The notes: a model not told the origin generated them from the letters alone. Positions 2,601 to 34,900 are shown, counted from the first letter of the stretch. The stretch: 40,132 nt of DNA from Anthoceros angustus (GCA_010909165.1 VJWM01000360.1:1-40132), one strand, 5' to 3'. Numbers and translations are program-made.

Positions 2601-3828
2601 TATCATAGAAAAACTAATATGAATGAATTCAAATACATATGGAAGTACTCACATGTACCCAAAGCATAGTATACATGAAACAAAAAAGAAAAAATAGAAA
2701 AATTACACAAAATCTAATCTAAATAAATCATATATGGAAGTACTCACTCTTGGTGTGAAGTCATCATTCCCAAATATATTTGCTGCACAGCAATGCATAC
2801 ATATATAGATCCAAAGTGACTCTTTTATCGATATCTACCCTCATATTTTGTATTTATCTCGATATTATGTGAAAAATTATATGAAGAAGACGTTAGTCGT
2901 ATTATATTGACATTTGATTTTTTCCCGATATGATATTGCCAGAGTGTAAAAACTTCTTGTTACTTACTTGTTGTATGCCCATTCTTCTATAGAACTCTTC
3001 CTCAATGTAAGAGATTCAAGCATTTGCTACTCTAGTGGATAGAAGGCTCTCGAAGGCCAATGGCCTCCTAGATTAGATGAATAGTCTCACCACCGGACTA
3101 TACAAGATAGACTCTATTGTGCTTATGACATAGACGCAGCCTAGATAGCTTATAGGTAGCTTTGCTAGTGTCCAGTCATGTATAATCTCTTTATAGTAGA
3201 ATATAAGAATACCCTAATTCTAGGTATATCTTGATATTCTAACACTTAAGACTTAAAGCGTTAGCTTGCAACAAGCACGGCTATGGTAGGCCTAGCTAAC
3301 TGTGCTCGACATCGCCTTGGTCTTGCCATTTCACTCCCGAGCTCAAGGGAAGTGGAACCTCACAATGCTTTATTTTTCTCAACATGCCCTTTGGTCTTGT
3401 CAATCCACTCAGAGCGATAACGATCTCTTCCTCTCAACACTGCATAGGCTCCAAGCAGTCCTTGACAACTCGCAGCCACCGATGAGATGCTACTCTTTAT
3501 TTACAACGGAGTAGAAGCCGAATGCTAGCCATCCATGCCGCTGGCTATGGCAACAAGACTCCACACAAAACCATTTCTAGCTCTCCATCCAAGCGCCAAG
3601 CCCCGCTTGTCAAACTTCCACAAGCTCCAAAGCGAAGCGCTCATCCCACGACGAAACCCTATGCTCGTCACTTTGGTAGTACACAATAGATATACCTTAT
3701 TATTTTATTTAATAAATCAATAACATCGAATCGATTTTATATATTTCTATAAAATCCTCCCTTGCTCGGCCAGGGTCGTGGGTGGACTCGTCTCGCTCTA
3801 AACGCAAAATCCATGCTCATGCATTTGC

Positions 3829-4074
3829 TGCCATAAAAAATATTAGGCTTAGCACTATTCACTAGGGTACTAATTTAATCATTTTATCTACCTAGGCACA
3901 AAACTTTTCCTAGGTAGTTAGTTGGTTAGGTAGTTAACTTGATGGTTACAACTACTTATGGTTGTAACCACCTAACCTCCTAACCACCTTGCCTATAAAT
4001 AGCTTTGTATTTTGTATTAAATCAATTGTCATATAAGAATCTCTTCTCAAGAGCCTAGTGTATGATTTTCATCA
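3829..4074 (+). repeat. 5' LTR
   Basis: Starts TG and ends 'ttttcatca'. Colinear with 10965-11232, including the hairpin and 'cctataaata'. Confidence 0.85.
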
Positions 4075-4085
4075 TGGTATCGAGC
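4075..4085 (+). promoter_or_regulatory. Primer-binding site, tRNA-iMet type
   Basis: 'tggtatcgagc' immediately after the LTR, one base short of TGGTATCAGAGC. Confidence 0.9.
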
Positions 4086-5029
4086 ACAGCTCCTTGTGCT
4101 TGAGCACCTTGCTTGCTTTTTCTCAAGGCTCCTCTCTCCTCAATGCATCTGCATCTTTAGCTTTTCCAACAAGATCATGGAGCATGGAGACCTCGCTTTG
4201 AATAGCAACCAACTTGAGGGAGCACAACACGTTAATGATGCACTGATTCACCTCTGTTTGCCCTCCATGGATTGTATCAATCCCAGAAACAAGAGTATAG
4301 AGAAAGATCAAGGCTTCAAGAATAAGAGACAACAACAACCTGACTATTTGCAATTCAGAGGAAAACTTTGATCTCAACGCCCCGAAATTGATGTTGTTGA
4401 AGCACAAGTGTCGCTCATAGAAGCCCTTGTTTCTAAGTCTGAGATAGAGTAGGTAACATAAATCACGCAAAAGATCTCCTAACTTCCTTTGACCTTTTGC
4501 AATCTAGCGCCATTGAGTCGCCTATTTTAAGTACATTAAGCATAGGCCAAAGGTCTTCACTCCTAACCCGGATCATCCGCAGCGATCTCTTGACTCCATT
4601 AGAGCGTAATTCTTCATATTGCTACTAATGATAGATTGAATTATCTAACCGATCAATTACATTCAATCATCGACGCCTTCATGAACCGCCTCCCAAGAGC
4701 CAATAGATCCAACTCACTTGTAAGCCCACAGATTTTGATGACTATGCATGATTCCCTTGAAGAAATGCTATAATTGCTCACGCTTCCTCTCCGCTAATAC
4801 AAGCGGAAGTCGTCGTGTCAAGTACATGCATCTGCATCAATAAACACACCGAATGTCTCACCGTAGACTTCTTCGAAAGAAAGAAATTGCGAAGAGCAAG
4901 ATATATTGAAGCCTGGAATGTATGGCTCAAGAAGAGCAGCCAATGGCAAGATGAACTTGAAAAGTTCAAAAGAGAAGGAGAAGAAGAAGTTGCACCGAAT
5001 CAAAGCCCACCACTTTGTTTCAAGCACAC

Positions 5030-5770
5030 AACTTCATGGAGAAAGATAGATTCAATGGAAGAGGATATGATGTAGGCAAGACCGAGAAGGAGTGTGAAGT
5101 CATGGCCTATGGAATATTGTCGAGGAACCGAGACCGACACCTTTGGGACGAAGATAAACATGAAGAATGGGACGCTAAGGACTTAAGGGCCCAGATATCC
5201 TTCTTCAAGGTCTTACCAATTCATGGTACGCCAAGTTTCGTGGAGCCGCACATCTCAATACGTGGAGCGCTAGCTCAATTATATGCCTCTAAAGACGGAT
5301 GAGCTTATTGATCGCCCGTCATCTCCACAACCCGAAAATGAAGGAGAATGATTCCATTGATCATCATATCACGCTTTCCGTGTTGCTAAGAATAATCAAG
5401 CATCATCCGACGAGAAACTTCATCGAGAAAGCAGCTTTTATTGCTCTCCTTGCCTCCTTACCACCCTCCTATAGGTCCTTTGTGACAACACAAAATGCGT
5501 CCTTAGAGCCGCATGAGAAAGACGAATCGGCTCACCGGATATCGATGGAATTAATTGAGCCATTATAGCTGAGGATGCACCGTCGACAAGAGAATCGCGA
5601 TCTACGTGATGTTTACGCGAGGCGGTGGGAAGAGGGCGGGGGCCGAGGCGGAAGACCCTTTCCTCCTAGGCCAAATCCCATAGAACCGCTTCTTCCACTC
5701 AAGAGGTAAGAAGAAGGCTGGAGTTATTGTAATTGGTGCAAATCAATCACATGGAGAAGGATCACAAGAA
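5030..5770 (+). pseudogene. gag: copia gag (UBN2/Retrotran_gag_2-like core plus degenerate CCHC knuckle)
   Basis: Motifs across frames: FMEKDRFNGRGYDV, EEWDAKD, LAQLYASKD, KMKENDSIDHHIT, ALLASLPPSYRSFVTT, and CNWCK..H.EKD at ~5728-5765. Confidence 0.85.
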
Positions 5771-5878
5771 GAAGAAAAGAGCCCAAGAAGGAGGCACCGA
5801 GCAAATGTTGCAAGAAAAGAGCTCAGAAAATCAAGCATTCACCTGATGCTTGGCATCATCCAAGCCCTCAACCAATAT

Positions 5879-6200
5879 TGGTATTTAGACAACGTTACAT
5901 CTCATATCTGTCACAACTTAAACTCTTTTGAGTCTTACTCGATATGGACATCAAAGATCGGCGATGATCATAACCTCACATGTAGGTTCGTTCTCGATGC
6001 TCTTGTGCCAAGTTCTCTCTCTCTCATGTCCTCCATGTACCATCCATGTGTAAAAACCTAGTGTCACCGCTAGTTTGTGTTGAACATAGCATGCAAATTC
6101 TCCTCCAAGGATATTTGTCTTCTTTCTTATCTATCAAGTAAGTCGCACACCATCGCTTACACTAGAAGATGGACTATACAAACTCTCGGTCAAGTGGGTC
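5879..6200 (+). pseudogene. pol: copia aspartic protease remnant
   Basis: WYLDNVTSHIC at 5879 corresponds to WYLDSGA(T/S)xHM. The 3' boundary is approximate. Confidence 0.8.
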
Positions 6201-6254
6201 CCTCACATCTCATCAATGTAGCTTCCCAAAATTCTCACCTCCTCCCATACTATG

Positions 6255-6990
6255 CTTTGGCGCCGTTTAGGTCATCCTAATAGCCGATCCAAATGTCTAA
6301 GGGAAATTTTTATCACCTCCTCTCCAAGATAGAACCCCTCTTGGTGTGAAGCTTGTTGTCACCAAAGCACCAAGCTCCTTTTCATAACCCATCTCCACAG
6401 TGCTAAGGCACCTCTTGAGTTGGTTCATCGACATTTGTGGTCCCATTTCGCCTTCATTTAGTGGTTGCGATACTTTTTAACCTTCATTGATGATTACTCT
6501 CGTTTTGTCCTCACCTATATCCCGAGACACAAAAGCCCCTTTCTTTTCAAGGATTACATGATGTGAAGCGACTACGGATAAGAAACTCAAAACATTGCGT
6601 TCGAAAATGGTGGCGAGTTTACATCCAATAATTTTGCTGATTTTTGCCGAGCTGAAGGAATAGCTCGGAACTCAACTGTACACACTCCTCAAAATGGCGT
6701 CAGAGAATAAGAATTTACACCTACAAGAGATCCGTTGCTTGCTCACCAAGCCCAACTATCCAAGAGTTATTGAGGCCATTATGACAAACGTATCTCCTCA
6801 ATCGGCCCACCTCTGCGGTCAAGGTATGACACCTTATGAAGCTTTCCGTCAAGCCTCCATTGACCATCTTGATTTTGGATCACTGCGTATGTTTTATACC
6901 CAAAGTACAACGCAAGAAGTTAGACCTGCAGCCAAGTATACTTTCATTGGCTATCTAAGGCATCAAAGGATATAAGTTATTCCACCTTCC
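6255..6990 (+). pseudogene. pol: GAG-pre-integrase and integrase core
   Basis: LW(H)RRLGHPN, CEAC, PLELVH(S)DICGP, RYFLTFIDDYSRF, KTLRS(D)NGGEFTS..F..FC..EGI and TP(Q)QNGV, with 1-3 nt deletions. Confidence 0.9.
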
Positions 6991-7589
6991 ACAAATTATC
7001 TATGCCGAGCGTGACTTTTCATGAGTCCCCTTTACTTTCCCCTTGTGGGAGCTCACCACTCTCGATGTTCCTTCGATGCAACGGGTCCTCATCTTTTGAT
7101 GATGATGAATATGTCACCTTCATCCGCTCCATTTTGCGTTCCTTTTGTTGAACCTACTGCGGGAGGAGGAGGCTGATAGAACATATTCCACGTCGACCTA
7201 CTACACATCCGCACACAAGAACCTCTCCACTTGAGGATGACTATCATCTCGGGGCGATTTCATTATCCAGAATGAGCAATTGTGCATGATGACGAGATTG
7301 GAAGACGAAGATGAGTCGACTCACCAACACAAGAGCCACTCATGAGGAAGTCGACATTGAAGAAAATATTCCACAACAACACGCGAGGTACAACCGAGAA
7401 CTAGACCTAACATTCCAGACTGCAGATGGAAGGAACCACCCCTTGGATACCTTGCTACCATAGATGATCCCTCCTTTTCACCTTATCATCAAGGCTCAAA
7501 GCCCACAGTTGATCCGCCGCTTACCTTAAAACAAGCATTTTCCTCCCGAGAAAGACTTGTGGAAATAGTAATAGATTAGTCTCATTAGT

Positions 7590-8520
7590 CAAGAATTCTA
7601 CATGGAATTAGTGAAACCACCTAAGGGAAGAAAGATAGTGACTAGCAAGTGGGTATTCAAAATAAAAAGAAAGGCGATGGTTCCATAGAAAGATATAAGG
7701 CACGCTTAGTGGCAAGAGGGTTTACCAGTTATGGTTTAGATTACACAGGCCACCTATGCACCGGTTGCCAAGTTTGCCTCCCTAAGAATGATCTTTGCCT
7801 TGCACAATATGACCTACACCTCCATATGATGGGCGTCAAAGATACCTTCATGGGCGTGCAGAAGAAATTATATGAAACAGCCGAGGGCTATGAGGTCAAG
7901 GGAAAGGAAGACTTGGTATGCAAACTCATTAAATGCCTTTATAACAATCGAGCAAAGAATGGAACGTCATACATGTCAAGCTAGTTAACCGAGGCTTTCG
8001 ACAAAGCAAGCGGATGCTAGCATGTACATATTGAAATCGTAGTGATTTTCTATATCTCCGCTCTATGTTGAGACTTATTTATGGCCTCATCCTCACTCTC
8101 TCTCTTAAATGAAACCAAGGCATGGTTAAAGTCATTTTGAAATGACCGATTTAGGAGAGATGACTTATGCCCTTGGGGTTAATATTATAAGGGATAGAGG
8201 CAACAAAACTTTAAGCTTAGTACAAACTAAGTATATAAAAGAAAGCTTAGCCAAGTTTGGACTTGAAGATGCTAAGCCATCCACTACACCATTTGCAAGT
8301 GGCATTCGGCTCACTAAAGCTATGAGCCCTCAAACAGATGCGGAAAAACAAGAGATGTTAGCAGTCCCTTATAGACATGTGGTGGGTACCTTGATTTATT
8401 TAAGCAATTTTACAAGACCCGACATCTCCTTCGAAGTTAGTGCATGTTCCCAATTTCTTGAAAACCCTGGAAGAGAACATTGGGCATCATCAACGAATAT
8501 TTAGATATCTCAAAGGCACT
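7590..8520 (+). pseudogene. pol: Reverse transcriptase (RVT_2, copia type)
   Basis: NSTWELVKPPKGRKIVTSKWVFKIK, DGSIERYKARLVARGF, degenerate LYV(D)DLF at ~8061, and the open stretch 8142-8504 (TDLGEMTYALGVNIIRDR...PYRHVVGTLIYLSNFTRPDISF...PGREHW). Confidence 0.95.
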
Positions 8521-8579
8521 ATGCACCTGGATTAATGTTTAGCATCGACCCGGCATCCCGGTTAATTCTAGCATTTGCG

Positions 8580-9023
8580 ATGATTATGCGCGATCCTGAT
8601 ACAAGTCCGTGATCGTTACATATTATTACCGGAGGAGCACCCATATCATGGTCAAGTAAGAAACAACCAACCATTGCCCTCCTGGCACGAGTCCGAATAT
8701 AGAGTCCTAACCTCGGTTTCCAAGGATATTGTCAAGCAGTTAGCTTTAAGTGAACTTGGTCATCCTCGAATGATCCCACTCCTCTATTTAGTGATAGCAG
8801 GGAGCCATAGCCTTAGCTAGAAACCCCATCTTTCACTCTCGGACCAAGCATATAGCCGTTGAATATCACTACATTCGAGAAATGCTAGAAAATAAGACAA
8901 TAAACATAAGTTATGTCCAAACCCATGAGAACCCAAATTGATATCCTAACTAAGTCTTTAGGACAAGATTTACAAAACAAACACATGAGAAGTTTAGGCA
9001 TAGTGTATGTTAAATCACCCTAA
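8580..9023 (+). pseudogene. pol: RNase H; pol stop at 9021-9023
   Basis: ISWSSKKQPTIAL, GAIALARNPIFHSRTKHIAVEYHYIRE, DILTKSL...LGIVYVKSP*. Confidence 0.9.
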
Positions 9024-9712
9024 CCTTGGTTGATTAAGAAGAAAAACTTTATTGGGCATTAAAAATAGATCTCCTAAAGGTCAAGTATTTTGTCCAATTC
9101 ATTAAGTTCTTCTCTATCTCTACACAGTCCTCATTGTATTCTCTATCCTCCTCTGAGTTTCCAAAATGAACCTAGTACATATAAGTAATCAGTTTTAATA
9201 ATTTATAATAATTAGATTTTGCACTAATTAAATGCGGTTAATTGTGGCACTTAGGGCACTCACAATAGATGTGTTTTGTGTGCCCCTCATATTCCTCACA
9301 TGGCTTACAGCCTAGCCACCATATGAATGCCTTTGTTGGCATGTATACTCTGGGCTTCGATTTCAATATCCCGGGACATATTAAATACACATTTTGGCTA
9401 GATCAGCTTTAGGCAATAGAGAATCGGATCTCATATGTATTCCTTTTCCCACTTTCACCGGGAGCCACCTTTATACCTCCAGTCCCAATACATTTGTCTA
9501 AACCTAAAAAGAAATACAATTTAGTTTTAGGTTAATAAACCAACCATATAAATAGGATAATATAGTAGGAGTTTTTTGTTTTAGTTTTACTAAACGCTCT
9601 TACATATTTTCTTTTCTCCTATTTCGTTTCCCTATTTTGGTCCACTTTTCCTATCGCAATCCTCACTTCCTTAAGAATTTCTTCATATCCTGTCAATACG
9701 AGGAAATGTCGG

Positions 9713-10195
9713 TCATTTATGTTGCGGTGAAATTTCAATCGAGCTACTTACTGAGGCGGCTTTGAAGCTTTCAGCGTGCTCAGGATGAAGAAATTTTTCC
9801 CGACGCACTGCACGTGACCTCCATGAGGGACTTCCTTCAGCAACAGGCTCCTCTGCGACAGGCTGCTCAACAATTGGTGACTTTGCAAGTTTGTGGGCAG
9901 CACCGCTGGACACCTCCATCTCCTCCGAATCAATTTGGAATTTGTCATCTTCATATGCTGGATCATCTTCCGAATCCGTCGATATGCAAACAATTGGTGG
10001 AGGCTTGAACAATGAAGCTAGATCTGGTGGCCGTTTTGCTCTCTCAGTGTCCTCACTTCTGCTATGGGAGGCAGTGGAGGAAGGGCTATGTCCCCTTAAC
10101 ACCCTTTTACCTGCACAGGAGAAGAACAACATTAAGGCAACACAGGCATCAAAATTTACAGCTACTGGATGCGGGATCTTGACCTCGGCACTCAC
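9713..10195 (-). CDS. Antisense ORF in the copia 3' region; S/E/D/P-rich hypothetical protein, 160 aa
   Basis: Longest ORF in the window, in a GC-richer island. Contains the acidic tract STDSEDDPAYEDDKFQIDSEEMEV. GTG start only, no recognised domain. Confidence 0.35.
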   Translation of the reverse strand: MSAEVKIPHPVAVNFDACVALMLFFSCAGKRVLRGHSPSSTASHSRSEDTERAKRPPDLASLFKPPPIVCISTDSEDDPAYEDDKFQIDSEEMEVSSGAAHKLAKSPIVEQPVAEEPVAEGSPSWRSRAVRREKFLHPEHAESFKAASVSSSIEISPQHK

Positions 10196-10294
10196 GGGGA
10201 GGCCCCATCGGGCCTTCCTCCTCCATCAACGTTCTCTCATTTCTTGGAGGTCTACAAGATGATTGAAGACCGAGCTTTGGCGGCAAGATGTCTG

Positions 10295-10777
10295 CTTGAT
10301 GGTTACAACTACTTATGGTTGTAACCACCTTGCCTATAAATAGGCTTTGTATTTATCTCGATATTATGTGAAAAATTACACAAAATCCCTCCCCTCCACA
10401 CCATGTCGTGAAGGAATTGCGGCATGGCGTGTTCGAGTTGAGCATTCACCGGCCCGGGCTTGTGGACTCGTCTCTCGTTCTAAAACGCACAAAATCCATG
10501 CTCATGCCCTCGCTCGACATCGCCTTGGGTCTTGCCATTTCACTCCGAGCTCAAGGGAAGTGGAACCTCACAATGGTATCTTCCTCTCAACACCGTGCTA
10601 GGCTCCAAGCATCGCGTGGTAGAGTTGTGGATGTGGTAGGCCTAACTCACTCCTAAGCGCAAGGGAAGTGGAACCTCACAATGGTATCTTCCTCTCAATA
10701 CATACTAGGCTCCAAGCAGCCCACCGTCCTTGACGACTTACAGCCACCTCACACCATATCTTTCGTTACTTACTTGT
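10295..10777. other. Patchwork of short fragments of the LTR and modules A, B, C, R1 and R2
   Basis: Successive ~15-60 bp pieces match other parts of the window and overlap by short microhomologies. Confidence 0.85.
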
Positions 10778-10952
10778 TTTATTAATTGGTTTAAGTTCTC
10801 TTAAAATTTGTTTAGGTTCTTAAACTTATTTCCGCTTTCTTTTCATAGCTTAAGTTTTGATTACTTTTCTTAGGCTTATAGCTTGTTATTTAGTGGGAGT
10901 CTATTGACATTTTAGGCCTCATTTTAATGGTAGTTCTCTCACCCACGTTCAT

Positions 10953-10964
10953 AGTGAGTGGGAG
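10953..10964 (+). promoter_or_regulatory. Polypurine tract
   Basis: 'agtgagtgggag' abuts the 3' LTR start. Confidence 0.8.
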
Positions 10965-11232
10965 TAATGAAATAGATTAGGTTAGGGCACTATTCACTAG
11001 GGTACCTAACTTAATCATCTTTATCTACCTAGGGCATTAAGTAGTTACTAGTTAGTTGCTCTAGGTAGTTAATGGTTAGGGTAGTTATAACTACTTGATG
11101 GTTACAACTACTTATGGTTGTAACCACCTAACCTCCTAACCACCTTGCCTATAAATAGGCTTTGTATTTTGTATTAAATCAATTGTCATATAAGAATCTC
11201 TTTCTCAAGAGCCTAGTGTATGATTTTCATCA
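10965..11232 (+). repeat. 3' LTR, 268 bp
   Basis: Begins 'taatgaaat' and ends 'attttcatca' (imperfect terminal inverted repeat, TG read as TA). It matches 3829-4074 and is followed by module B. Confidence 0.92.
11150..11157 (+). promoter_or_regulatory. LTR TATA box
   Basis: 'cctataaata' occurs in all three LTR copies, ~80 bp before the LTR end. Confidence 0.7.
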
Positions 11233-12040
11233 CTTGCACACAACAAAAATGTACTTGCGCTTCAGCTTTGTCACAAACTCCTCCACGTCAAGCATCGCGT
11301 GGTAGAGTTGTTCTTGTTACATGTTGCCCTTTCTTCTCCTACAAAACTTTTCCTAAGGACTCAAAGTACCATGCCTGGATGTGGTAGGCCTAACTACATG
11401 CATATTGGTGAGGAGCCTCCAATGTGCCGACATGGCGATGAGCGGCACTTGCTTGGAGATAGTCTAAATTCGGGGAGAGGATTCTTTGGTGAGAGGGAGG
11501 GAGCGCCACATGAGGAAGGCCCAGAGCTAAGGACGTCCCACCTCTCATGGACCCTTCTTGCAATTTGACCGATGCTCCTTCGAGAGGCACTTGCACGAGA
11601 CAATAGCATGATCAAGGCAACAGTGGAAGCGACGTGGCCTTGGCTCTTGCCGACTCACTCCTAAGCGCAAGGGAAGTGGAACCTCACAATGGTATCTTCC
11701 TCTCAATACATACTAGGCTCCAAACTCCAAGCAGCCCACCGTCCTTGACGACTTACAGCCACCTCACACCATATCTTTCGTTACAACAGAGTACAAGCTG
11801 GAATCTTAGCCATCATGCCCTCGCTCGACATCAAGACTCCACACAAAACCGTTGCTAGCTCTCTCCCATCCAAGCGCTCATCCAAAGCCAAGCACTTCAT
11901 CCCGCGGACGAGACCCTAACTTCGCTTTTGGTGCTTGTTACTTATTGGTGATACATAAAAGAGATACCTTATTTTTATTAAGTAAATCAATAACATCGAA
12001 TCAGATTTTATATGTTTGTATAAAATCCCCTCCCTTTAAG

Positions 12041-12230
12041 TGTCCGTAGGGCTGTGGGTATGGACCAGTGTCTTTGGTTCGTGAGGTACATACGGTTGTC
12101 GTAGGAATGTGGGTGTGGACTTATCTCTACTTCATAAAGATTATACGGTTGCCATAGGGCTGTGTGTATGGATTGATCCCTAGTTCATGAAGTTCACAGA
12201 GTTGCCGTAGAGTTGTGGATGTGGACTGGT
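12041..12230. repeat. Degenerate ~53-bp minisatellite x4 after R2 (representative copy; present in most units)
   Basis: The core 'tg(t/c)c(g/a)tag(g/a)..tgtg(g/t)(g/a)t(a/g)tgga' recurs at ~12046, 12101, 12154 and 12207. A single copy follows R1. Confidence 0.8.
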
Positions 12231-13045
12231 TTGTGGTTCGTCTGAAAAATCTCGATATGCGGTGAGGGAAAACGTGTTGAGGCGCATCCGTTGCTGGCGG
12301 CGCTCCTGCCCTAACTCACTCCTACAAGGGTAGCAAGAGCTCCATCCTCCTTCACTTCTCCCTAGCCTCCCCTCGTCAGATTCGAGCTCCCTCATCCTCC
12401 CCTCCACACCCCTTGCTTTCTTTGCTCTCGCTCAAGGGAACGTCTCGGATGGTCGTGAAATAACACCATAATACTATACACCGGTATATCAATTTAAACA
12501 CCTTGAAATTTTGGCTTTTTCTTTTTATGCTTTAGCTCGCTTAGCACCGTCGGGCACAAAATCATCAATTATGGGTGGCTCGATCGACTAAGATTACGAC
12601 AGACCAATTGCAAGCTAGACTTGCGGGCCTAGTCATGCATGACTAGGCCGCAATCTACTGCGACCGCCACTGAAATTGGCCGAGCCTGAGCGTGATATGA
12701 TCGTGGGGACACCGACGGGAGGTAGTTTTTGACTGGCAGAGCCTTAGCTTGGTGCATGCCAATCGAAGCTCAAGCTTCGCCCAAAAAGAAGACAAAGGAT
12801 CATTTGAATTGTCTAGAGCTGGCATCGAAATAGGTACAGCATAGTAGGGTTGCTTTTTTTCCAATTTTTAAATAAAAAAAATTATACCATATGCAAAATT
12901 ATGATGGGAACAAAACTGCCCAAAATAGTCTTAAAGAATCTCATGAGAAAAAAAAGAGATCGTCTTCTATACGTATCTAAGAAGTCTCAATTTGAGCTCT
13001 TTGAACTTAAGCTGAGGTTAAGCCGAGGTTTCTGCGCTTTACATG

Positions 13046-13456
13046 TCATGCTATACCATGTCTACGCTTGAATCCTAAGGCCCACCCATTTGAAAATATG
13101 AGAGCCCGTCTGTTCGCACTTCTTGGTAATTGCTCATAGAAAAATTTTCGCTGTTTACATATTTCAGCATCTTTTGCGGCTCCTCCCTTCTCGCCACAAA
13201 CCAATCATACAACTGTTTCTCAACTTCGGAGATGCACAAGGTCGCAAGCGTCTACGTTCTAAGTCGTGTTGTTTGACACTGGATAATCGTTCTTTCTTGA
13301 TGACTCGCTTGATGGTTGCCACCGAGACCTTCACTCGAAAATGGCTAGTGGCCCATTCACTTAGCGCCTTGTGAGTGATTAGCTTGTTAGCCTCTCGTGG
13401 GCTAAAATGTCTTTTTGTTGCATTTGCAATGTCACTCTTCTCTTGGTAGCTCTCAT
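13046..13456 (-). pseudogene. CENP-B/pogo-type double-HTH ORF, copy 1 (indels)
   Basis: ATG at 13456 and TGA at 13048-13046. Colinear with the 20409-20828 copy. Confidence 0.8.
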
Positions 13457-13466
13457 GCTTGCAAGT

Positions 13467-13912
13467 CTATTCAAAAGATTTTATTTGTAAGTACTGATTC
13501 CATAAAGAAGAAAGAAAAGAAGAATATCATAGAAAAACTAATATGAATGAATTCAAATACATATGGAAGTACTCACATGTACCCAAACTGCATAGTATAC
13601 ATGAAACAAAAAAGAAAAAATAGAAAAATTACACAAAATCTAATCTAAATAAATCATATATGGAAGTACTCACTCTTGGTGTGAAGTCATCATTCCCAAA
13701 TATATTTGCTGCACAGCAATGCATACATATATAGATCCAAAGTGACTCTTTTATCGATATCTACCCTCATATTTTGTATTTATCTCGATATTATGTGAAA
13801 AATTATATGAAGAAGGCGTTAGTCGTATTATATTGACATTTGATTTTTCCGATATGATATTGCCGAGTGTAAAAACTTCTTGTTACTTACTTGTTGTATG
13901 CCCATTCTTCTC
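13467..13912 (-). other. Predicted exon-intron block upstream of the HTH ORF (representative copy)
   Basis: Exons: 13912-13891 (22 nt), 13708-13674 (35 nt), 13587-13577 (11 nt). Introns: 13890-13709 GTAAGT..TGCAG, 13673-13588 GTGAGT..TGCAG, 13576-13467 GTGAGT..AATAG. All introns are AT-rich and two are strongly T-rich. Confidence 0.6.
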
Positions 13913-16900
13913 CTATAGAACTCTTCCTCAATGTAAGAGATTCAAGCATTTGCTACTCTAGTGGATAGAAGGCTCTCGGAAGGCCAATGGCCTCCTAGAT
14001 TAGATGAATAGTCTCACCACCGGACTATACAAGATAGACTCTATTGTGCTTATGACATAGGCAGCTAGATAGCTTATAGGTAGCTTTGCTAGTGTCATGG
14101 GTGTCATGTATAATCTCTTTATAGTAGAATATAAGAATACCCTAATTCTAGGTATATCTTGATATTCTAACACTTAAGACTTAAAGCGGTTGCAACAAGC
14201 CCGGCTATGGTAGGCCTAGCTAACTCTGAGCTCGACATCGCCTTGGGTCTTGCCATTTCACTCCTGAGCTCAAGGGAAGTGGAACCTCACAATGCTCTAT
14301 TTTTCTCAACACGCCCTTTGGTCTTGTCAATTCACTCGTAGAGCCTGATAACGATCTCTTCCTCTCAACACCGTGCTAGGCTCCAAGCAGCCCGCCGTCC
14401 TTGACAACTCGCAGGCCACCTCAGATGAGATGCTACTCTTTATTTACAACAGAGTAGAAGCCAGAATGCTAGCCATCCATGCCGTTCGCTATTGGCAACA
14501 AGACTCCACACAAAACCATTTCTAGCTCTCCCATCCAAGCGCCAAGCCTTGCTTGTCAAACTTCCACCCCAAGCTGCAAAGCGAAGCACTTCATCCCATG
14601 ACGAAACCCTATGCGGTGCTCGTCACTTTGGTAGTACACAATAGATATACCTTATTATTTTATTTAATAAATCAATAACATCGAATCAGATTTTATATAT
14701 TTCTATAAAATCCCTCCTTGTCGTCAGAGGGCTGTGTATGGATTGATCCCTAGTTCATGAAGTTCACAGAGTTGTGAGAGTTGTGGATGGTGGTTTGTGG
14801 TTCGTCGAAAAATCTCGATATGCTTGAGGGAAAGCGTGTTGAGGCGCATCCGTTGGCGGCGCTCGCCCTAACTCACTCCTACAAGGGTAGCAAGAGCTCC
14901 ATCCTCCTTCACTTCTCCCTAGCCTCCCCTCGTGTCAGTATTCGAGCTCCCTCATCCCTCCCCTCCACACCCCTTGCTTTTGCTCTCGCTCTAAAACGCA
15001 CAAAATCCATGCTCATGCTCTGCGGCTTGCACACAACAAAATGTACTTGCGCTTGACTTTGTCACAAACTCCTCCACGTCAAGCATCGCGTGGTAGAGTT
15101 GTTCTTGTTACATGTTGCCCTTTCTTCTCCTACAAAACTTTTCCTAAGGACTCAAAGTACCATGCCCGGATGTGGTAGGCCTAACTACATGCATATTGGT
15201 GAGGAGCCTCCAATGTGCCGACATGGCGATGAGCGGCACTTGCTTGGAGATAGTCTAAATTCGGGAGAGGATTCTTTGGTGAGAGGGAGGGCGCCTACAT
15301 GAGGAAGGCCCAGCTAAGGACGTCCCACCTCTCATGGACCCTTCTTGCAATTTGACACTGATGCTCCTTGCTGAGAGGCACTTGCCTGAGACAACAGCAT
15401 GATCAAGGCAACAGGTGGAAGCAGCACGTGGCCTTGGCTCTTGCCGACTCACTCCTAAGCGCAAGGGAAGTGGAACCTCACAATGGTATCTTCCTCTCAA
15501 TACATACTAGGCTCCAAACTCCAAGCAGCCCACCGTCCTTGACGACTTACAGGCCACCTCACACCATATGCTGCTCGTTACTTACAACAGAGTACAAGCT
15601 GGAATCTTAGCCATCATGCCCTCTGGCTACGACATCAAGACTCCACACAAAACCGTTGCTAGCTCTCTCCCATCCAAGCGCTCAGCCCCGCTTGTCAAAC
15701 TTCCACCCCAAGCTCCAAAGCGGCGCTTCATCCGCGGACGAGACCCTAACCCAGTTTTTGGCGGTGCTTGTTACTTATTAGTGATACATAAAGAGATACC
15801 TTATTTTATTAAGTAAATCAATAATATCGTCGAGATTTTATATGTTTGTATAAAATCCCTCCCTTTAAGTGTCCGTAGGGTGTGGGTATGGACCGTGTCT
15901 TTGGTTCGTGAGGTACATACGGTTGTCGAGGAATGTGGGTGTGGACTTATCTCTACTTCATAAAGATTATACGGTTGCCATAGGGCTGTGTATGGATTGA
16001 TCCCTAGTTCATGAAGTTCACGAGTTGTAGAGTTGTGGATGTGGGTGGTTTGTGGTTCGTCTGAAAAAATCTCGATATGCCGGTGAGGGAAAACGTGTTG
16101 AGGCGCATCCGTTGCTGGCGGCGCTCCTGCCCTAACTCACTCCTACAAGGGTAGCAAGAGCTCCATCCTCCTTCACTTCTCCCCTAGCCTCCCTCGCTGT
16201 CTGTATTCGAGCTCCCCTCATCCCCCCCTCCACACCCCCTTGCTTTCTTTGCTCTCGCTCAAGGGAACGTCTCAGATGGTCTGTGAAATAACACCATAAT
16301 ACTATACAGTCTGGTATATCAATTTAAACACCTTGAAATTTTGGCTTTTTTTCTTTTTTATGCTTTAGCTCCGCTTAGCACCCGTCGGGCACAAAATCAT
16401 CAATTATGGACTGGCTCGATCGACTAAGATTACGACAGACCAATTGCAAGCTAGACTTGCAGGCCTAGTCATGCATATGACTAGGCCGCAATCTATGCGA
16501 CCGCCACTGAAATTGGCCGAGCTGGCGTGATATGATCGTGGGGACACCGACGGAGGTAGTTTTGATCGCGAGCCTTAGCTTGGTGCATGCCAATCGGAGC
16601 TCAAGCTTCGCCCAAAAGAAGACAAAGGATCATTTGAATTGTCTAGAGTCGGCATCGAAATAGGTACTGACATAGTAGGGTTGCTTTGTTTTTTCCAATT
16701 TTAAATAAAAAATTATACCATATGCAAAATTATGATGGGAACAAAACTGCCCAAAATAGTCTTAAAGAATCTCATGAGAACAAAAGAGATCGTCTTCTAT
16801 CATTATCTAAGAAGTCTCAATTTGAGCTCTTTGAACTTAAGCTGAGGTTAAGCCCGAGGTTTTCTGCGCTTTACATGTCATGCTATACCATGTCTACGCT

Positions 16901-17317
16901 TGAATCCTAAGGCCCACCCATTTGAAAATATGAGAGCCCGTTTGTTCCGCACTTCTTGGTAATTGCTCATAGAAAAATTTTCTGTTTACATATTTCAGCA
17001 TCTTTTGCGGCTCCTCCCTTCTCGCCACAAAACCAATCATACAACTGTTTCTCAACTTCGTGAGATGCGCAAGGTCGCAAGCGTCTACGTTCTAAGTCGT
17101 GTTGTTTGACACTGGATAATACGTTCTTTCTTGATGACTCGCTTGATGGTTGCCAGAGACCTTCACTCGAAAATGGCTAGTGGCCCATTCACTTAGCGCC
17201 TTGTGAGTGATTAGCTTGTTAGCCTCTGTGGGCTAAAATGTCTTTTTGTTGCATTTGCAATGTCACTCTTCTCTTGGTAGCTCTCATGCTTGCAAGTCTA
17301 TTCAAAAGATTTTATTT
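13487..17317. repeat. Array unit, 3831 bp, with an extra ~270-bp module-C piece at ~14728-14990
   Basis: After R1 the sequence jumps to minisatellite copy 3 and module C, then returns to B at 'ctctcgctc|taaaacgcac'. Confidence 0.9.
16878..17287 (-). pseudogene. CENP-B/pogo-type double-HTH ORF, copy 2 (indels)
   Basis: Colinear with the 20409-20828 copy. Confidence 0.8.
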
Positions 17318-19939
17318 GTAAGTACTCGATTCCATAAAGAAGAAAGAAAAGAAGAATATCATAGAAAAACTAATATGAATGAATTCAAATACATATGGAA
17401 GTACTCACATGTACCCAAACTGTACAGTATACATGAAACAAAAAAAGAAAAAAATAGAAAAATTACACAAAATCTAATCTAAATAAATCATATATGGAAG
17501 TACTCACTCTTGGTGTGAAGTCATCATTCCCAAATATATTTGCTGCACAGCAATGCATACATATATAGATCCAAAGTGACTCTTTTATCGATATCTACCC
17601 TCATATTTTGTATTTATCTCGATATTATGTGAAAAAATTATATGAAGAAGACGTTAGTCGTATTATATTGACATTTGATTTTTTCCCTGATATGATATTG
17701 CCGAGTGTAAAAACTTCTTGTTACTTGTTGTATGCCCATTCTTCTCCTATAGAACTCTTCCTCAATGTAAGAGATTCAAGCATTTGCTACTCTAGTGGAT
17801 AGAAGGCTCTCGAGGCCAATGGCCTCCTAGATTAGATGAATAGTCTCACTACCGGACTATACAAGATAGACTCTATTGTGCTTATGACATAGACGCAGCT
17901 AGATAGCTTATAGGTAGCTTTGCTAGTGTCTGTAGGTGTCATGTATAATCTCTTTATAGTAGAATATAAGAATACCCTAATTCTAGGTATATCTTGATAT
18001 TCTAACACTTAAGACTTAAAGCAGCAGTTGCAACAAGCCTGGCTATGGTAGGCCTAGCTAACTACAGGCTCAGCACATCGCCTTGGGTCTTGCCATTTCA
18101 CTCCTGAGCTCAAGGGAAGTGGAACCTCACAATGCTTTATTTTTCTCAACATGCCCTTTGGTCTTGTCAATCCACTCGTAGAGCCTGATAACGATCTCTT
18201 CCTCTCAACACCGTGCTAGGCTCCAAGCAGCCCACCGTCCTTGACAACTCGCAGCCACCTCGGATGAGATGCTACTCTTTTATTTACAACGGAGTAGAAG
18301 CCGGAATGCTAGCCATCCATGCTGGCTATGGCAACAAGACTCCACACAAAACCATTTCTAGCTCTCCCATCCAAGCGCCAAGCCACCTTGTCAAACTTCC
18401 ACCCCAAGCTCCAAAGCGGCGCTTCATCCCAGACGAAACCCTATGCGGTGCTCGTCACTTTGGTAGTACACAATAGATATACCTTATTATTTTATTTAAT
18501 AAATCAATAACATCGAATCAGATTTTATATATTTCTATAAAATCCCTCCCTTTAAGTGTCCGTAGGTGGGTGTGGACTCGTCTCGCTCTAAACGCACAAA
18601 ATCCATGCTCATGCTCTGCTTGCACACAACAAAATGTACTTGCGCTTGACTTTGTCACAAACTCCTCCACGTCAAGCATCGCGTGGTAGAGTTGTTCTTG
18701 TTACATGTTGCCCTTTCTTCTCCTACAAAACTTTTCCTAAGGACTCAAAGTACCATGCCTAGATGTGGTAGGCCTAACTACATGCATGTTGGTAAGGAGC
18801 CTCCAATGTGCCGACATGGCGATGAGCGGCACTTGCTTGGAGATAGTTTAAATTCGGAGAGAGGATTCTTTGGTGAGAGGGAGGGAGCGCCTACATGAGG
18901 AAGGCCTAGAGCTAAAGGACGTCCCACCTCTCATGGACCCTTCTTGCAATTTGACACTGATGCTCCTTGCTGAGAGGCACTTGCCTGAGACAACAGCATG
19001 ATCAAGGCAACAGTGGAAGCGACGTGGCCTTGGCTCTTGCCGACTCACTCCTAAGCGCAAGGGAAGTGGAACCTCACAATGGTATCTTCCTCTCAATACA
19101 TACTAGGCTCCAAACTCCAAGCAGCCCACCGTCCTTGACGACTTACAGCCACCTCACACCATATCTTTTCGTTACTTACAGCAGTACAAGTGGAATCTTA
19201 GCCATCATGCCCTCGCTACGACATCAAGACTCCACACAAAACCGTTGCTAGCTCTCTCCCATCCAAGCGCTCATCCAAAGCCAAGCACTTCATCCATGGA
19301 CGAGACCCTAACTTCGCTTTTGGCGGTGCTTGTTACTTATTGGTGATACATAAAGAGATACCTTATTTTATTAAGTAAATCAATAATATCGTCGAGATTT
19401 TATATGTTTGTATAAAATCCTCCCTTTAAGTGTCCGAGGGTGTGGGTATGGACCAGTGTCTTTGGTTCGTGAGGTACATACGGTTGTCGAGGAATGTGGG
19501 TGTGGACTTATCTCTACTTCATAAAGATTATACGGTTGCCATAGGGCTGTGTGTATGGATTGATCCCTAGTTCATGAAGTTCACGAGTTGCCGTAGAGTT
19601 GTGGATGTGGTGGTTTGTGGTTCGTCGAAAAATCTCGATATGCCGGTGAGGAAAGCGTGTTGAGGCGCATCCGTTCTTGGCGGCGCTCACGCCTAACTCA
19701 CTCCTACAAGGGTAGCAAGAGCTCCATCCTCCTTCACTTCTCCCTAGCCTCCCCTCATCCTCCCCTCATCCCTCCCCTCCACACCCCTTGCTTTCTTTGC
19801 TCTCGCTCAAGGGAACGTCTCGGATGGTCGTGAAATAACACCATAATACTATACTCTGGTATATCAATTTAAACACCTTGAAATTTTGGCTTTTTCTTTT
19901 TATGCTTTAGCTCGCTTAGCACCGTCGGGCACAAAATCA

Positions 19940-20408
19940 TCAATTATGGGTGGCTCGATCGACTAAGATTACGACAGACCAATTGCAAGCTAGACTTGCG
20001 GGCCTAGTCATGCATATGACTAGGCCGCAATCTACCTACACCGACCGAAATTGGCCGAGCTGGCGTGATATGATCGTGGGGACACCGACGGAGGTAGTTT
20101 TGATGGCGAGCCTTAGCTTGGTGCATGCCAATCGAGCTCAAGCTTCGCCCAAAAGAAGACAAAGGATCATTTGAATTGTCTAGAGTCGCATCGAAATAGG
20201 TACAAGATAGTAGGGTTGCTTTGTTTTTTCCAATTTTAAATAAAAAATTATACCATATGCAAAATTATGATGGGAACAAAACTGCCCAAAATAGTCTTAA
20301 AGAATCTCATGAGAACAAAAGAGATCGTCTTCTATCGTATCTAAGAAGTCTCAATTTGAGCTCTTTGAACTTAAGCTGAGGTTAAGCCCGAGGTTTTCGC
20401 TTTACATG
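19940..20408 (-). pseudogene. Possible eroded pogo DDE_1 catalytic remnant downstream of the HTH stop (representative copy)
   Basis: EDDLFCSHEI at ~20311 resembles DIFNxDET. VILVDRATHN at ~19960 resembles LLVDNAxSH. The two motifs are ~116 codons apart. Multiple stops and frameshifts; by-eye only. Confidence 0.4.
20001..20026. other. 11-bp perfect inverted repeat with 4-nt loop in module C (in most units)
   Basis: ggcctagtcat-gcat-atgactaggcc. Also at 16462, ~23620, ~27194 and 33208. A perfect 24-bp palindrome at 12626-12649. Confidence 0.9.
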
Positions 20409-20828
20409 TCATGCTATACCATGTCTACGCTTGAATCCTAAGGCCCACCCATTTGAAAATATGAGAGCCCGTCATTCCGCACTTCTTGGTAATTGCTCAT
20501 AGAAAATTTTCGCCTGTTTACATATTTCAGCATCTTTTGCGGCTCCTCCCTTCTCTGCCACAAACCAATCATACAACTGTTTTTCAACTTCAGGAGATGC
20601 ACAAGGTCGCAAGCGTCTACGTTCTAAGTCGTGTTGTTTGACACTCTGGATAATACGTTCTTTCTTGATGACTCGCTTGATGGTTGCCACTGAGACCTTC
20701 ACTCGAAAATGGCTAGTGGCCCATTCACTTAGCGCCTTGTGAGTGATTAGCTTGTTAGCCTCTCTGTGGGCTAAAATGTCTTTTTTTTGTTGCATTTGCA
20801 ATGTCACTCTTCTCTTGGTAGCTCTCAT
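20409..20828 (-). CDS. CENP-B/pogo (Tigger, Abp1-like) N-terminal DNA-binding region, two HTH domains, ~139 aa consensus; best copy
   Basis: MRATKRRVTLQMQQKKDILAHREANKLITHKALSEWATSHFRVKVSVATIKRVIK resembles the CENP-B_N/HTH_ABP1_N type. RLRPCASPEVEKQLYDWF...EICKQAKIFY...FSNGWALGFKRRHGIA* resembles the HTH_Tnp_Tc5 type. This copy is open for 20472-20846; the C-terminus was read from the 27615 and 34460 copies. Confidence 0.85.
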
Positions 20829-21609
20829 GCTTGCAAGTCTATTCAAAAGATTTTATTTGTAAGTACTCGATTCCATAAAGAAGAAAGAAAAGAAGAATAT
20901 CATAGAAAAACTAATATGAATGAATTCAAATACATATGGAAGTACTCACATGTACCCAAAGCATAGTATACATGAAACAAAAAGAAAAAATAGAAAAATT
21001 ACACAAAATCTAATCTAAATAAATCATATATGGAAGTACTCACTCTTGGTGTGAAGTCATCATTCCCAAATATATTTGCTGCACAGCAATGCATACATAT
21101 ATAGATCCAAAGTGACTCTTTTATCGATATCTACCCTCATATTTTGTATTTATCTCGATATTATGTGAAAAATTATATGAAGAAGGCGTTAGTCGTATTA
21201 TATTGACATTTGATTTTTCCCGATATGATATTGCCGAGTGTAAAAACTTCTTGTTACTTACTTGTTGTATGCCCATTCTTCTCCTATAGAACTCTTCCTC
21301 AATGTAAGAGATTCAAGCATTTGCTACTCTAGTGGATAGAAGGCTCTCAGGCAGAAGGCCAATGGCCTCCTAGATTAGATGAATAGTCTCACTACCGGAC
21401 TATACAAGATAGACTCTATTGTGCTTATGACATAGACGCAGCTAGATAGCTTATAGGTAGCTTTGCTAGTGTCTGTAGGTGTCATGTATAATCTCTTTAT
21501 AGTAGAATATAAGAATACCCTAATTCTAGGTATATCTTGATATTCTAACACTTAAGACTTAAAGCGGTTGCAACAAGCACGGCTATGGTAGGCCTAGCTA
21601 ACTGTGCTC

Positions 21610-22079
21610 GACATCGCCTTGGGTCTTGCCATTTCACTCCGAGCTCAAGGGAAGTGGAACCTCACAATGCTTTATTTTTCTCAACATGCCCTTTGGTCTT
21701 GTCAATCCACTCGTAGAGCGATAACGATCTCTTCCTCTCAACACTGCTAGGCTCCAAGCAGCCCACCGTCCTTGACAACTCGCAGCCACCTCGGATGAGA
21801 TGCTACTCTTTTATTTACAACGGAGTAGAAGCGGAATGCTAGCCATCCATGCTGGCTATGGCAACAAGACTCCACACAAAACCATTTCTAGCTCTCCCAT
21901 CCAAGCGCCAAGCCCCGCTTGTCAAACTTCCACCCCAAGCTCCAAGCGCTTCATCCCACAGACGAAACCCTATGCGGTGCTCGTCACTTTGGTAGTACAC
22001 AATAGATATACCTTATTATTTTATTTAATAAATCAATAACATCGAATCAGATTTTATATATTTCTATAAAATCCCCTCC
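21610..22079 (+). repeat. Sub-repeat R1 (representative copy), coding-like
   Basis: Diverged copy of R2; a 75-nt block is 62/75 identical when compared using the 14234 copy. Reads DIALGLAISL..REVEPHNALFFS and YNGVEAGMLAIHAGYGNKTPHKT. Confidence 0.85.
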
Positions 22080-22558
22080 TTGTCGGTCGCTGTAGGGCTG
22101 TGGGTGTGGACTCGTCTCTCGTTCTAAAACGCACAAAATCCATGCTCATGCTATTGCAGCTGCTTGCACACAACAAAAATGTACTTGCGCTTCAGCTTTG
22201 TCACAAACTCCTCCACGTCAAGCATCGCGTGGTAGAGTTGTTCTTGTTACATGTTGCCCTTTCTTCTCCTACAAAACTTTTCCTAAGGACTCAAAGTACC
22301 ATGCCTGGATGTGGTAGGCCTAACTACATGCATATTGGTGAGGAGCCTCCAATGTGCCGACATGGCGATGGCGGCACTTGCTTGGAGATAGTCTAAATTG
22401 GGAGAGGATTCTTTGGTGAGAGGGAGGAGCGCCTACATGAGGAAGGCCCGAGCTAAGGACGTCCCACCTCTCATGGACCCTTCTTGCAATTTGACACCGA
22501 TGCTCCTTCGAGAGGCACTTGCACGAGACAATAGCATGATCAAGGCAACAGTGGAAGC

Positions 22559-23007
22559 GACGTGGCCTTGGCTCTTGCCGACTCACTCCTAAGCGCAAGG
22601 GAAGTGGAACCTCACAATGGTATCTTCCTCTCAATACATACTAGGCTCCAAACTCCAAGCAGCCCACCGTCCTTGACGACTTACAGCCACCTCACACCAT
22701 ATCTTTTCGTTACTTACAGCCACCTCGGATGAGATGCTACTCTTTATTTACAACGGAGTAGAAGCGGAATCTTAGCCATCATGCCCTCGCTACGACATCA
22801 AGACTCCACACAAAACCGTTGCTAGCTCTCTCCCATCCAAGCGCTCAGCCCGCTCATCCAAAGCCAAGCACTTCATCCATGACGAGACCCTAACCCTTTT
22901 GGGCGGTGCTTGTTACTTATTGGTGATACATAAAGAGATACCTTATTTTTATTAAGTAAATCAATAACATCGAATCAGATTTTATATGTTTGTATAAAAT
23001 CCCTCCC
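22559..23007 (+). repeat. Sub-repeat R2 (representative copy), coding-like
   Basis: Reads DVALALADSLLSAREVEPHNGIFLS. YNRVQAGILAIMPSGYDIKTPHKT is seen in the 15.6 and 26.3 kb copies. Confidence 0.85.
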
Positions 23008-24042
23008 TTTAAGTGTCCAGGTGTGGGTATGGACCAGTGTCTTTGGTTCGTGAGGTACATACGGTTGTCGTAGGAATGTGGGTGTGGACTTATCTCTACT
23101 TCATAAAGATTATACGGTTGCCATAGGGCTGTGTGTATGGATTGATCCCTAGTTCATGAAGTTCACGAGTTCGTAGAGTTGTGGATGTGGTGGTTTGTGG
23201 TTCGTCGAAAAATCTCGATATGCGGTGAGGGAAAACGTGTTGAGGCGCATCCGTTCTTGGCGGCGCTCCCGCCTAACTCACTCCTACAAGGGTAGCAAGA
23301 GCTCCATCCTCCTTCACTTCTCCCTAGCCTCCCCTCGCTCGACATCGCCTTGGGTCTTGCCATTTCACTCCGAGCTCCCTCATCCCTCCCCTCCACACCC
23401 CTTGCTTTGCTCTCGCTCAAGGGAACGTCTCGGATGGTCTGTGAAATAACACCATAATACTATACAGTCTGGTATATCAATTTAAACACCTTGAAATTTT
23501 GGCTTTTTTTCTTTTTTATGCTTTAGCTCCGCTTAGCACCCGTCGGGCACAAAATCATCAATTATGGACTGGCTCGATCGACTAAGATTACGACAGACCA
23601 ATTGCAAGCTAGACTTGCAGGCCTAGTCATGCATATGACTAGGCCGCAATCTACCTTGCGACCTGCCAGCCTGAAATTGGCCGAGCCTGAGCGTGATATG
23701 ATCGTGGGGACACCGACGGGAGGTAGTTTTTGACTGGCAGAGCCTTAGCTTGGTGCATGCCAATCGGAGCTCAAGCTTCGCCCAAAAAGAAGACAAAGGA
23801 TCATTTGAATTGTCTAGAGTGGCATCGAAATAGGTCTGACATAGTAGGGTTGCTTTGTTTTTCCAATTTTAAATAAAAAATTATACCATATGCAAAATTA
23901 TGATGGGAACAAAACTGCCCAAAATAGTCTTAAAGAATCTCATGAGAACAAAAGAGATCGTCTTCTATCGTATCTAAGAAGTCTCAATTTGAGCTCTTTG
24001 AACTTAAGCTGGGTTAAGCCCGAGGTTTCTGCGCTTTACATG

Positions 24043-24449
24043 TCATGCTATACCATGTCTACGCTTGAATCCTAAGGCCCACCCATTTGAAAATATGAGA
24101 GCCCGTCTTCCGCACTTCTTGGGTAATTGCTCATAGAAAAATTTTCGCTTTACATATTTCAGCATCTTTGCGGCTCCTCCTTCTCGCCACAAAACCAATC
24201 ATACAACTGCTTTCTCAACTTCGGAGATGCGCAAGGTCGCAAGCGTCTACGTTCTAAGTCGTGTTGTTTGACACTGGATAATACGTTCTTTCTTGATGAC
24301 TCGCTTGATGGTTGCCAGAGACCTTCACTCGAAAATGGCTAGTGGCCCATTCACTTAGCGCCTTGTGAGTGATTAGCTTGTTAGCCTCTGTGGGCTAAAA
24401 TGTCTTTTTGTTGCATTTGCAATGTCACTCTTCTCTTGGTAGCTCTCAT
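24043..24449 (-). pseudogene. CENP-B/pogo-type double-HTH ORF, copy 4 (indels)
   Basis: Colinear with the 20409-20828 copy. Confidence 0.8.
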
Positions 24450-24479
24450 GCTTGCAAGTCTATTCAAAAGATTTTATTT

Positions 24480-30580: not shown

Positions 30581-30946
30581 GTGGTAGAGTTGTTCTTGTT
30601 ACATGTTGCCCTTTCTTCTCCTACAAAACTTTTCCTAAGGACTCAAAGTACCATGCCCGGATGTGGTAGGCCTAACTACATGCATATTGGTGAGGAGCCT
30701 CCAATGTGCCGACATGGCGATGAGCGGCACTTGCTTGGAGATAGTCTAAATTCGGGAGAGGATTCTTTGGTGAGAGGGAGGAGCGCCTACATGAGGAAGG
30801 CCCGAGCTAAGGACGTCCCACCTCTCATGGACCCTTCTTGCAATTTGACACCGATGCTCCTTCGAGAGGCACTTGCACGAGACAATAGCATGATCAAGGC
30901 AACAGTGGAAGCGACGTGGCCTTGGCTCTTGCCGACTCACTCCTAA
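30581..30946 (+). CDS. Module B hypothetical ORF (longest open copy, 121 aa; consensus possibly ~165 aa)
   Basis: The same frame (…VELFLLHVALSSPTKLFLRTQSTMPGCGRPNYMHIGEEPPMCRH…) is open in most B copies and extends upstream at 22100 and 25726. No recognised family. Confidence 0.3.
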   Translation: MVELFLLHVALSSPTKLFLRTQSTMPGCGRPNYMHIGEEPPMCRHGDERHLLGDSLNSGEDSLVRGRSAYMRKARAKDVPPLMDPSCNLTPMLLREALARDNSMIKATVEATWPWLLPTHS

Positions 30947-34871: not shown

Positions 34872-34900
34872 GCTTGCAAGTCTATTCAAAGATTTTATTT

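Follow-up and report, generated by a model that had tools for sequence, protein, structure and literature searches.

A 3.6-kb tandem repeat that carries the DNA-binding part of a pogo-family transposase gene behind a leader with predicted introns

The tandem array and its unit

The window (the whole stretch of Anthoceros angustus DNA analysed here, 40,132 nucleotides long) holds a head-to-tail array of a kilobase-scale unit, present in at least eight full or partial copies, and a Ty1/copia-type retroelement that interrupts it (Table 1). The original prediction of a 3.6-kb tandem repeat is borne out by the unit lengths and raw identities listed there, and the substitution divergence between units, measured away from indels, is 1.1-1.8%. 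The unit has three parts which follow one another in the order R2, X and R1 on the minus strand. Segment X, about 1.45 kb long, bears an open reading frame (ORF) for a helix-turn-helix (HTH) protein, and it lies between R1 (about 1.1 kb) and R2, which are direct copies of one another with 75-91% identity; R2 and the next R1 adjoin, with about 125 bp between them. Pfam searches with ten other ORFs of the unit and Rfam searches with three units gave no match, and the HTH ORF is the sole recognisable coding feature of the 3.6-kb unit.

Table 1. Positions of the features in the window. Leader coordinates were obtained by hand count on the minus-strand read-out and by motif census.
Feature	Position	Strand	Details
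Tandem array of 3.55-3.8 kb unit	10500..38658	.	self-BLAST and repeat families; raw identity 94-96%
Unit starts (near)	11233, 15026, 18619, 22163, 25793, 30517, 31809, 33767, 36193
Further partial units	1-1062 and 2593-3768
Ty1/copia-type retroelement interrupting the array	3770..10400	+	gag at ~5.3 kb and RVT_2 at 7.6-8.5 kb, in separate frames
Segment R1	11323..12433	-	diverged R2 paralogue, downstream of segment X
Segment X	12433-13885		bears the ORF
Segment R2	13885..14991	-	~1.1 kb, unclassified, upstream of the leader; internal R1/R2 repeat
TATAAAG motif	14123-14117	-	in R2, ~210 nt upstream of exon 1; motif census
Proposed exon 1, 22 nt	13891..13912	-	ATG 13905-13903; at the R2 edge; 5' end undefined
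Intron-like interval 1, 182 nt	13709..13890	-	GTAAGT...TGTGCAG; 69% A+T; T content 0.31
Proposed exon 2, 35 nt	13674..13708	-
Intron-like interval 2, 86 nt	13588..13673	-	GTGAGT...CAG; 55% T; long pyrimidine tract
Proposed micro-exon, 11 nt	13577..13587	-
Intron-like interval 3, 110 nt	13467..13576	-	GTGAGT...TAG; 48% T
Proposed exon 4	starts 13466	-	ORF ATG at 13456; TGA ends at 13046
ORF, unit A	13046..13456	-	ATG to TGA; 9 frameshifting indels
ORF, copy B	16878..17287	-	7 frameshifting indels
ORF, copy C	20409..20828	-	best preserved; 124 open codons (from 20846), one break, 20 codons, TGA
ORF, copy D	24043..24449	-	12 frameshifting indels
ORF, copy E	27615..28030	-	6 frameshifting indels; open across the site of the copy C break
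ORF, copy F	34460..34871	-	6 frameshifting indels
Two extra head-to-tail copies of a 581-bp sub-module (581-584 bp)	28542..29700	-	ATGs at 28609 and 29193

The sub-module in the last line of Table 1 consists of 70 nt of upstream sequence, the entire leader and the first ~25 codons of the ORF, and it is present three times in tandem at 27956-29700. At its joints the ORF and the upstream region meet in a CGAGAG microhomology, which cuts the ORF at about codon 25.

Several smaller repeats accompany the array. At the left end of the window a block made of an array piece and the 5' part of the copia element is duplicated with a period of ~2.72-2.78 kb (1-2590 and 2593-5300). Two zones, at 10300-11230 and 38660-40132, are pieced together from 30-130-nt snippets of various regions of the unit (two isolated ORF-start snippets included), which meet at short common motifs such as AAGTAACAAG; a perfect 120-nt repeat of 1.8 copies lies within such a zone at 39392-39607. 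Some 400 nt downstream of its ORF stop, each unit also has a perfect 24-nt palindrome, GGCCTAGTCATGCATGACTAGGCC (12626-12649, and for example ~20010-20035). R1 is headed by two to three tandem copies of a 53-nt motif (e.g. 12090-12192 and 23059-23161), and R2 by a single copy.

Homology and truncation of the HTH reading frame

Judged by its sequence relationships, the ORF is the first ~143 residues of a pogo transposase, with both of its HTH domains. Pfam searches with the copy at 20409-20828 found PF18107 (HTH_ABP1_N) at E 0.001 and 19.1 bits (the cutoff of 22.5 bits is not reached) and PF03221 (HTH_Tnp_Tc5) in two halves that flank the break in this copy (profile positions 1-37 with 16.8 bits and 47-63 with 19.6 bits); each half alone is below the 22.2-bit cutoff, and the domain is continuous in tblastn alignments. 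A sequence search of the PDB matched S. pombe Abp1 (1iuf). A full HMMER scan of 1.84 billion representative sequences gave 45 matches, none of them below E 1e-10 and the best with 41% identity, and the best matches are full-length pogo transposases that have both HTH_Tnp_Tc5 and DDE_1. The closest relatives are from the liverworts Riccia fluitans (KAL2610444.1, 549 aa) and R. sorocarpa (KAL3690286.1, 591 aa); in local tblastn alignments their residues 11-148 are collinear with copy C (E 3e-28 and 5e-30) at 41-43% identity over ~140 residues, and the start codon of the ORF matches their own start. The AlphaFold (AF2) model based on this same copy has a pLDDT of 88 and forms a three-helix bundle for the N-terminal CENP-B-type (psq-like) HTH, and the top Foldseek match is CENP-B(1-129) on DNA (1hlv), with a weak score, as expected for two flexibly linked domains.

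How does the frame end? The full-length relatives continue after RHGI with x-x-Y-x-K/R-HGE and then the DDE domain, whereas the sequence here reads RHGIA, stop, HVKR, and the homology continues for a few codons beyond the TGA and then ceases. No DDE_1 domain (PF03184) was found in the window, and tblastn with seven full-length transposases aligned only residues up to ~150; nothing homologous to the DDE-derived core or the C-terminal dimerisation domain lies downstream of about residue 143, and both are absent. Searches around the ORF over 2 kb and 3.7 kb for inverted repeats of any sequence, as candidate terminal inverted repeats (TIRs), gave no plausible pair. The 1.84 billion representatives included no relative with an HTH-only architecture or with more than 41% identity. 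A word-indexed protein search with the 124-aa piece, whose length filter leaves out full-length transposases, gave no match, and exact 30-mers from the start of the ORF had 0 matches in metagenome contigs. Because the start is collinear with that of the relatives, the homology ends shortly after the stop and neither DDE_1 nor TIRs were found in these searches, the payload of the unit is best read as a 5' fragment of a pogo gene that specifies the DNA-binding module only. The double-HTH (pogo/CENP-B-type) assignment made in the original prediction therefore holds by Pfam, PDB search, tblastn and fold match, and its suggestion of a putative DNA-binding-only protein agrees with the domain content, the tblastn alignments placing no catalytic domain in the ORF.

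The copies of the ORF and the differences among them

As assembled, none of the six ORF copies is intact over its full length, and one (copy C) is nearly so; the breaks in the HTH frame of unit A had been understated (nine frameshifting indels, Table 1). When copies C and E are combined into a two-copy mosaic, the frame that starts at the native ATG is uninterrupted for 140 codons (in-script frame check), and relative to this mosaic the six copies have 2-14 indels each, mainly deletions, and only 1-5 mismatches. Since copy C keeps its frame for 124 codons and the mosaic is clean, the ORF may be intact in every unit. Frameshifts remain in the six-copy majority consensus, which is unfit as an accurate consensus because the errors are systematic and biased toward deletion.

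The copies clearly differ where they are assembled, but are these differences mutations in the DNA? In a 995-column module aligned for six copies there are 31 variable events, 28 of which are indels, with 20 at CG or CHG (CAG/CTG/CCG) sites and 7 at homopolymers. Up to five variants occur at one site among the six copies, the intervening sequence is identical, and plain substitutions are almost nil. In four whole units, 87 of 147 events fall at CG/CHG sites against 37.5 +/- 5.4 expected, and control trinucleotides have no excess. In nanopore sequence, 5mC motifs and homopolymers are where consensus errors are known to accumulate (PMC6591954). Five alleles at one site with none adjacent to it are unlike real mutation, and we therefore read the differences among the copies as long-read consensus noise, probably at methylated cytosines. 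It follows that neither the frameshifts nor the "missing" CAG acceptors (below) are to be trusted as seen, and that the frameshifts, their pattern being probably technical, are no argument against a gene. A practical warning attaches to this result: ORFs and splice sites inside the repeats of this assembly may be falsely broken, and such breaks should not be taken for biology.

The error pattern further suggests dense CG and CHG methylation of the array, a reading drawn from that pattern and from a CpG observed/expected ratio of 0.7 only, and to be set beside the many CG sites that have no noise. Dense methylation of both kinds is a mark of silenced plant repeats. Variable columns make up 0.25% of the leader, 2.5% of the ORF and 4-6% of the R cores, a fraction that tracks the density of C-containing motifs, not coding status. 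Conservation among units is no higher in the ORF than elsewhere in the unit, in a comparison of copies within one array, which cannot reveal constraint.

The leader and its predicted introns

Upstream of the ORF the original prediction had placed three introns of 182, 86 and 110 nt between exons of 22, 35 and 11 nt and the exon that bears the ORF, and on the minus-strand count all of these coordinates and lengths proved exact. The three intervals look like U2-type introns in having GT...AG borders, a donor that fits the consensus, a pyrimidine tract and U-richness. Every copy keeps donors 2 and 3 as well as acceptors 1 and 3; the 17.7-kb copy has lost the donor of interval 1. As assembled, three of nine copies have the CAG acceptor of the micro-exon, at 13588, 17420 and 24581 only, as the motif census confirms for the original prediction, and this site has seven variants among the nine copies; because it is one of the noisy sites, its "loss" elsewhere is probably technical.

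Could such a pattern arise by chance in AT-rich filler, in which case the leader would never be spliced and the ORF would be a dead fragment? We regard this as possible but doubtful; it concerns the leader only and is compatible with the explanation of the array that we favour (below). The 447-nt leader has three GT[AG]AGT hexamers where 0.15 are expected, and 0 of 2000 shuffled sequences reached three, so that P is below 0.001. Two of these three strong donors stem from one event: intervals 2 and 3 have their first 16 nt in common and belong to an internal duplication with 94-nt spacing (family D10), so the donors are effectively two independent ones. This counts on the side of chance, as do the exonic sides of the donors (CAA, AGA and CAT), which deviate from the AG consensus, and exon 1 with its undefined 5' end. 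Against chance, even two independent GT[AG]AGT hexamers in 447 nt have a probability of ~0.006, across the unit there are seven such hexamers on the minus (ORF) strand versus two on the plus strand, and intervals 2 and 3 are T-rich with pyrimidine tracts on the ORF strand that precede each AG at the proper distance. In their splice-site signals and T-richness the intervals resemble introns more closely than chance would give, and we treat them as predicted introns.

The reading frames of the spliced leader carry less weight. With the micro-exon included, the distance from the exon-1 ATG to the main ATG would be 15 + 35 + 11 + 10 = 71 nt, which gives a 24-codon uORF (ATG 13905) whose TGA overlaps the main ATG (as ATGA), next to a frame in HTH phase that has no ATG; the two-frame claim of the original prediction is reproduced by this arithmetic. 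With the micro-exon skipped, which the original prediction had not considered, the distance would be 60 nt, and the exon-1 ATG would then be in frame with the HTH ORF and add a 20-codon extension. Neither the openness of frames across ~24 codons nor the ATGA overlap exceeds what chance would produce, and neither is significant by itself. The three upstream exons amount to 7, 11 and 3 codons, a length below what protein searches can use.

It had also been proposed that the locus is a host-exon/transposase fusion or an intron-rich 5' leader. Exon 1 lies in R2, the non-pogo segment, which makes the leader a composite of R2 and X sequence; this fits the proposal but is no sign that the leader is used. 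The paralogous site in R1 lacks both the exon-1 ATG and the GTAAGT donor. Upstream coding exons are not supported: the in-phase exons lack an ATG, and the relatives, whose proteins begin at the position of the main ATG, have nothing that corresponds to them. These exons would be leader rather than coding sequence.

Discussion

What kind of locus is this? The tandem unit holds a recognisable transposon segment, as transposon-derived satellites do, and the reading we favour, with a probability of roughly 0.55, is a transposon-derived macrosatellite with an HTH-only pogo remnant, the array being young, homogenised and probably methylated and silent. Segment X carries the 5' part of a pogo-family DNA transposon gene, with the native start codon and both HTH domains, in which a stop inside the old transposase frame cuts the protein at about residue 143 of ~550, the DDE domain and the TIRs having been lost. 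The composite unit of ~3.6 kb (R1 - X - R2) would then have been amplified head to tail, probably by unequal exchange, and later remodelled by microhomology-mediated sub-duplications and by insertion of the copia element. The AT-rich leader is possibly an old spliced 5' UTR that arose where X adjoins R2, and one exon-plus-intron module, once duplicated, may account for part of it. In appearance the array is heterochromatin, silent and with methylated cytosines. Long-read consensus errors at CG/CHG sites and homopolymers would explain most of the apparent frameshifts and absent CAG acceptors. The units themselves would then probably be close to identical, and an intact 140-codon ORF may be present in all of them; youth and homogenisation, not demonstrated selection, would have preserved it, and the remnant is probably without function.

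A less favoured reading, which we consider unlikely, makes the units (or a subset of them, for example an edge unit) a working multi-copy gene that is transcribed from R2, has its leader spliced with or without the micro-exon, and specifies a double-HTH protein of ~140-160 aa. Having no catalytic domain, such a protein would attach to pogo ends or to the array itself and either repress pogo transposition or serve as a satellite-binding factor. The clean mosaic ORF from the native ATG and the 124 codons of copy C are consistent with this, as is a stop that falls at a domain boundary, the end of the second HTH domain, of a protein with a confident AF2 model and CENP-B(1-129) as its top structural match; the non-random donors, the T-rich intervals, the TATA-like motif upstream and the exon-1 ATG that micro-exon skipping would place in the HTH frame point the same way. 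However, a young transposon fragment retains its ORF without any selection, conservation of the ORF does not exceed that of its flanks, rearrangements of the unit destroy the ORF, the error pattern suggests CG and CHG methylation, and the databases searched gave no HTH-only relative or close homologue. A silent remnant accounts at least as well as a gene for the homology beyond the stop, the lack of plausible TIRs, the inserted copia element, the interruption of the ORF by sub-repeats and the probable methylation, and overall the host-exon/transposase gene interpretation is partly supported. In its boldest form, in which every unit would be an intact spliced gene for a DNA-binding-only pogo-derived protein that binds pogo ends or the array, with the 11-nt micro-exon switching between a uORF-controlled and an N-terminally extended form, the gene reading seems quite improbable; if true, the array would encode its own satellite-binding factor, or a transposon repressor amplified in tandem, for which no plant counterpart has been described.

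That R2-X-R1 is a mobile composite, a non-autonomous element with LTR-like long direct terminal repeats that captured a pogo 5' fragment and formed the array by nested or tandem insertion or by LTR-LTR recombination, is very unlikely: X does lie between two direct ~1.1-kb copies, with transcription signals in the upstream one, but R1 and R2 are only 75-91% alike where whole units are ~98-99% alike, inspection by eye of the R/X borders revealed neither a primer-binding site nor TG...CA ends, R2 and the next R1 adjoin and are not one common repeat, and no gag/pol or other protein domain lies within the unit.

A 2020 survey of the superfamily recorded plant pogo elements only from Selaginella and some dicots (PMC7325037), and the present result documents a pogo lineage in a bryophyte-like genome. 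On the favoured macrosatellite reading the ORF is probably silent; if it were expressed, this would be a case of a plant macrosatellite with a gene for its own DNA-binding protein, and of a shortened bryophyte transposase that works as a repressor or a chromatin factor, with implications for the co-evolution of satellites and the proteins that bind them.

Comparison with known systems

The Riccia transposases of the pogo/Tigger family (Tc1/mariner superfamily) share with the present ORF the N-terminal CENP-B-type HTH and the HTH_Tnp_Tc5 domain, collinear from the start codon. They differ in that the frame here stops at about residue 143, has no DDE_1 and no TIRs, and sits inside a tandem unit and not in a discrete element. 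Satellite DNAs derived from transposons have been reviewed (PMC6947457), and the array resembles them in that a piece of a mobile element lies within a head-to-tail repeated unit. Unlike them, it has an unusually long unit (3.6 kb), a possibly intact start-to-stop ORF for a complete DNA-binding module, and a gene-like leader. Mammalian CENP-B and the S. pombe proteins Abp1, Cbh1 and Cbh2 are likewise pogo-derived double-HTH proteins, but they keep the DDE-derived core and the dimerisation domain and are single-copy conserved host genes, whereas the ORF here is HTH-only and multi-copy.

Among bryophytes, the Y-chromosome repeats of Marchantia polymorpha contain multi-copy ORF162, a RING-finger gene with male-specific expression. 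They are a bryophyte precedent for a small gene amplified inside a kilobase-scale repeat unit, with a RING finger there and a double HTH here. The human D4Z4 macrosatellite has a 3.3-kb unit, each with a DUX4 ORF, in an array that is normally methylated and silent; DUX4 is a double-homeodomain protein of retrogene origin whose expression and function are proven. The likeness lies in the kilobase-scale unit (3.3 kb there, 3.6 kb here), an ORF, possibly intact here, in each copy, two domains of helix-turn-helix type and probably the methylation and silence of the array, and the difference in that the ORF here is a transposase fragment with a putative product. The Drosophila P element has a repressor, KP, which is a shortened transposase reduced to its DNA-binding part. 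It comes from another transposon superfamily, with a THAP domain, and arises by internal deletion in a mobile element that still has its ends, with no tandem amplification. By analogy, then, D4Z4/DUX4 would be the nearest known system in architecture and the KP repressor the nearest in mechanism, and a KP-like occupation of transposase binding sites is how any expressed product of the array would most plausibly act.
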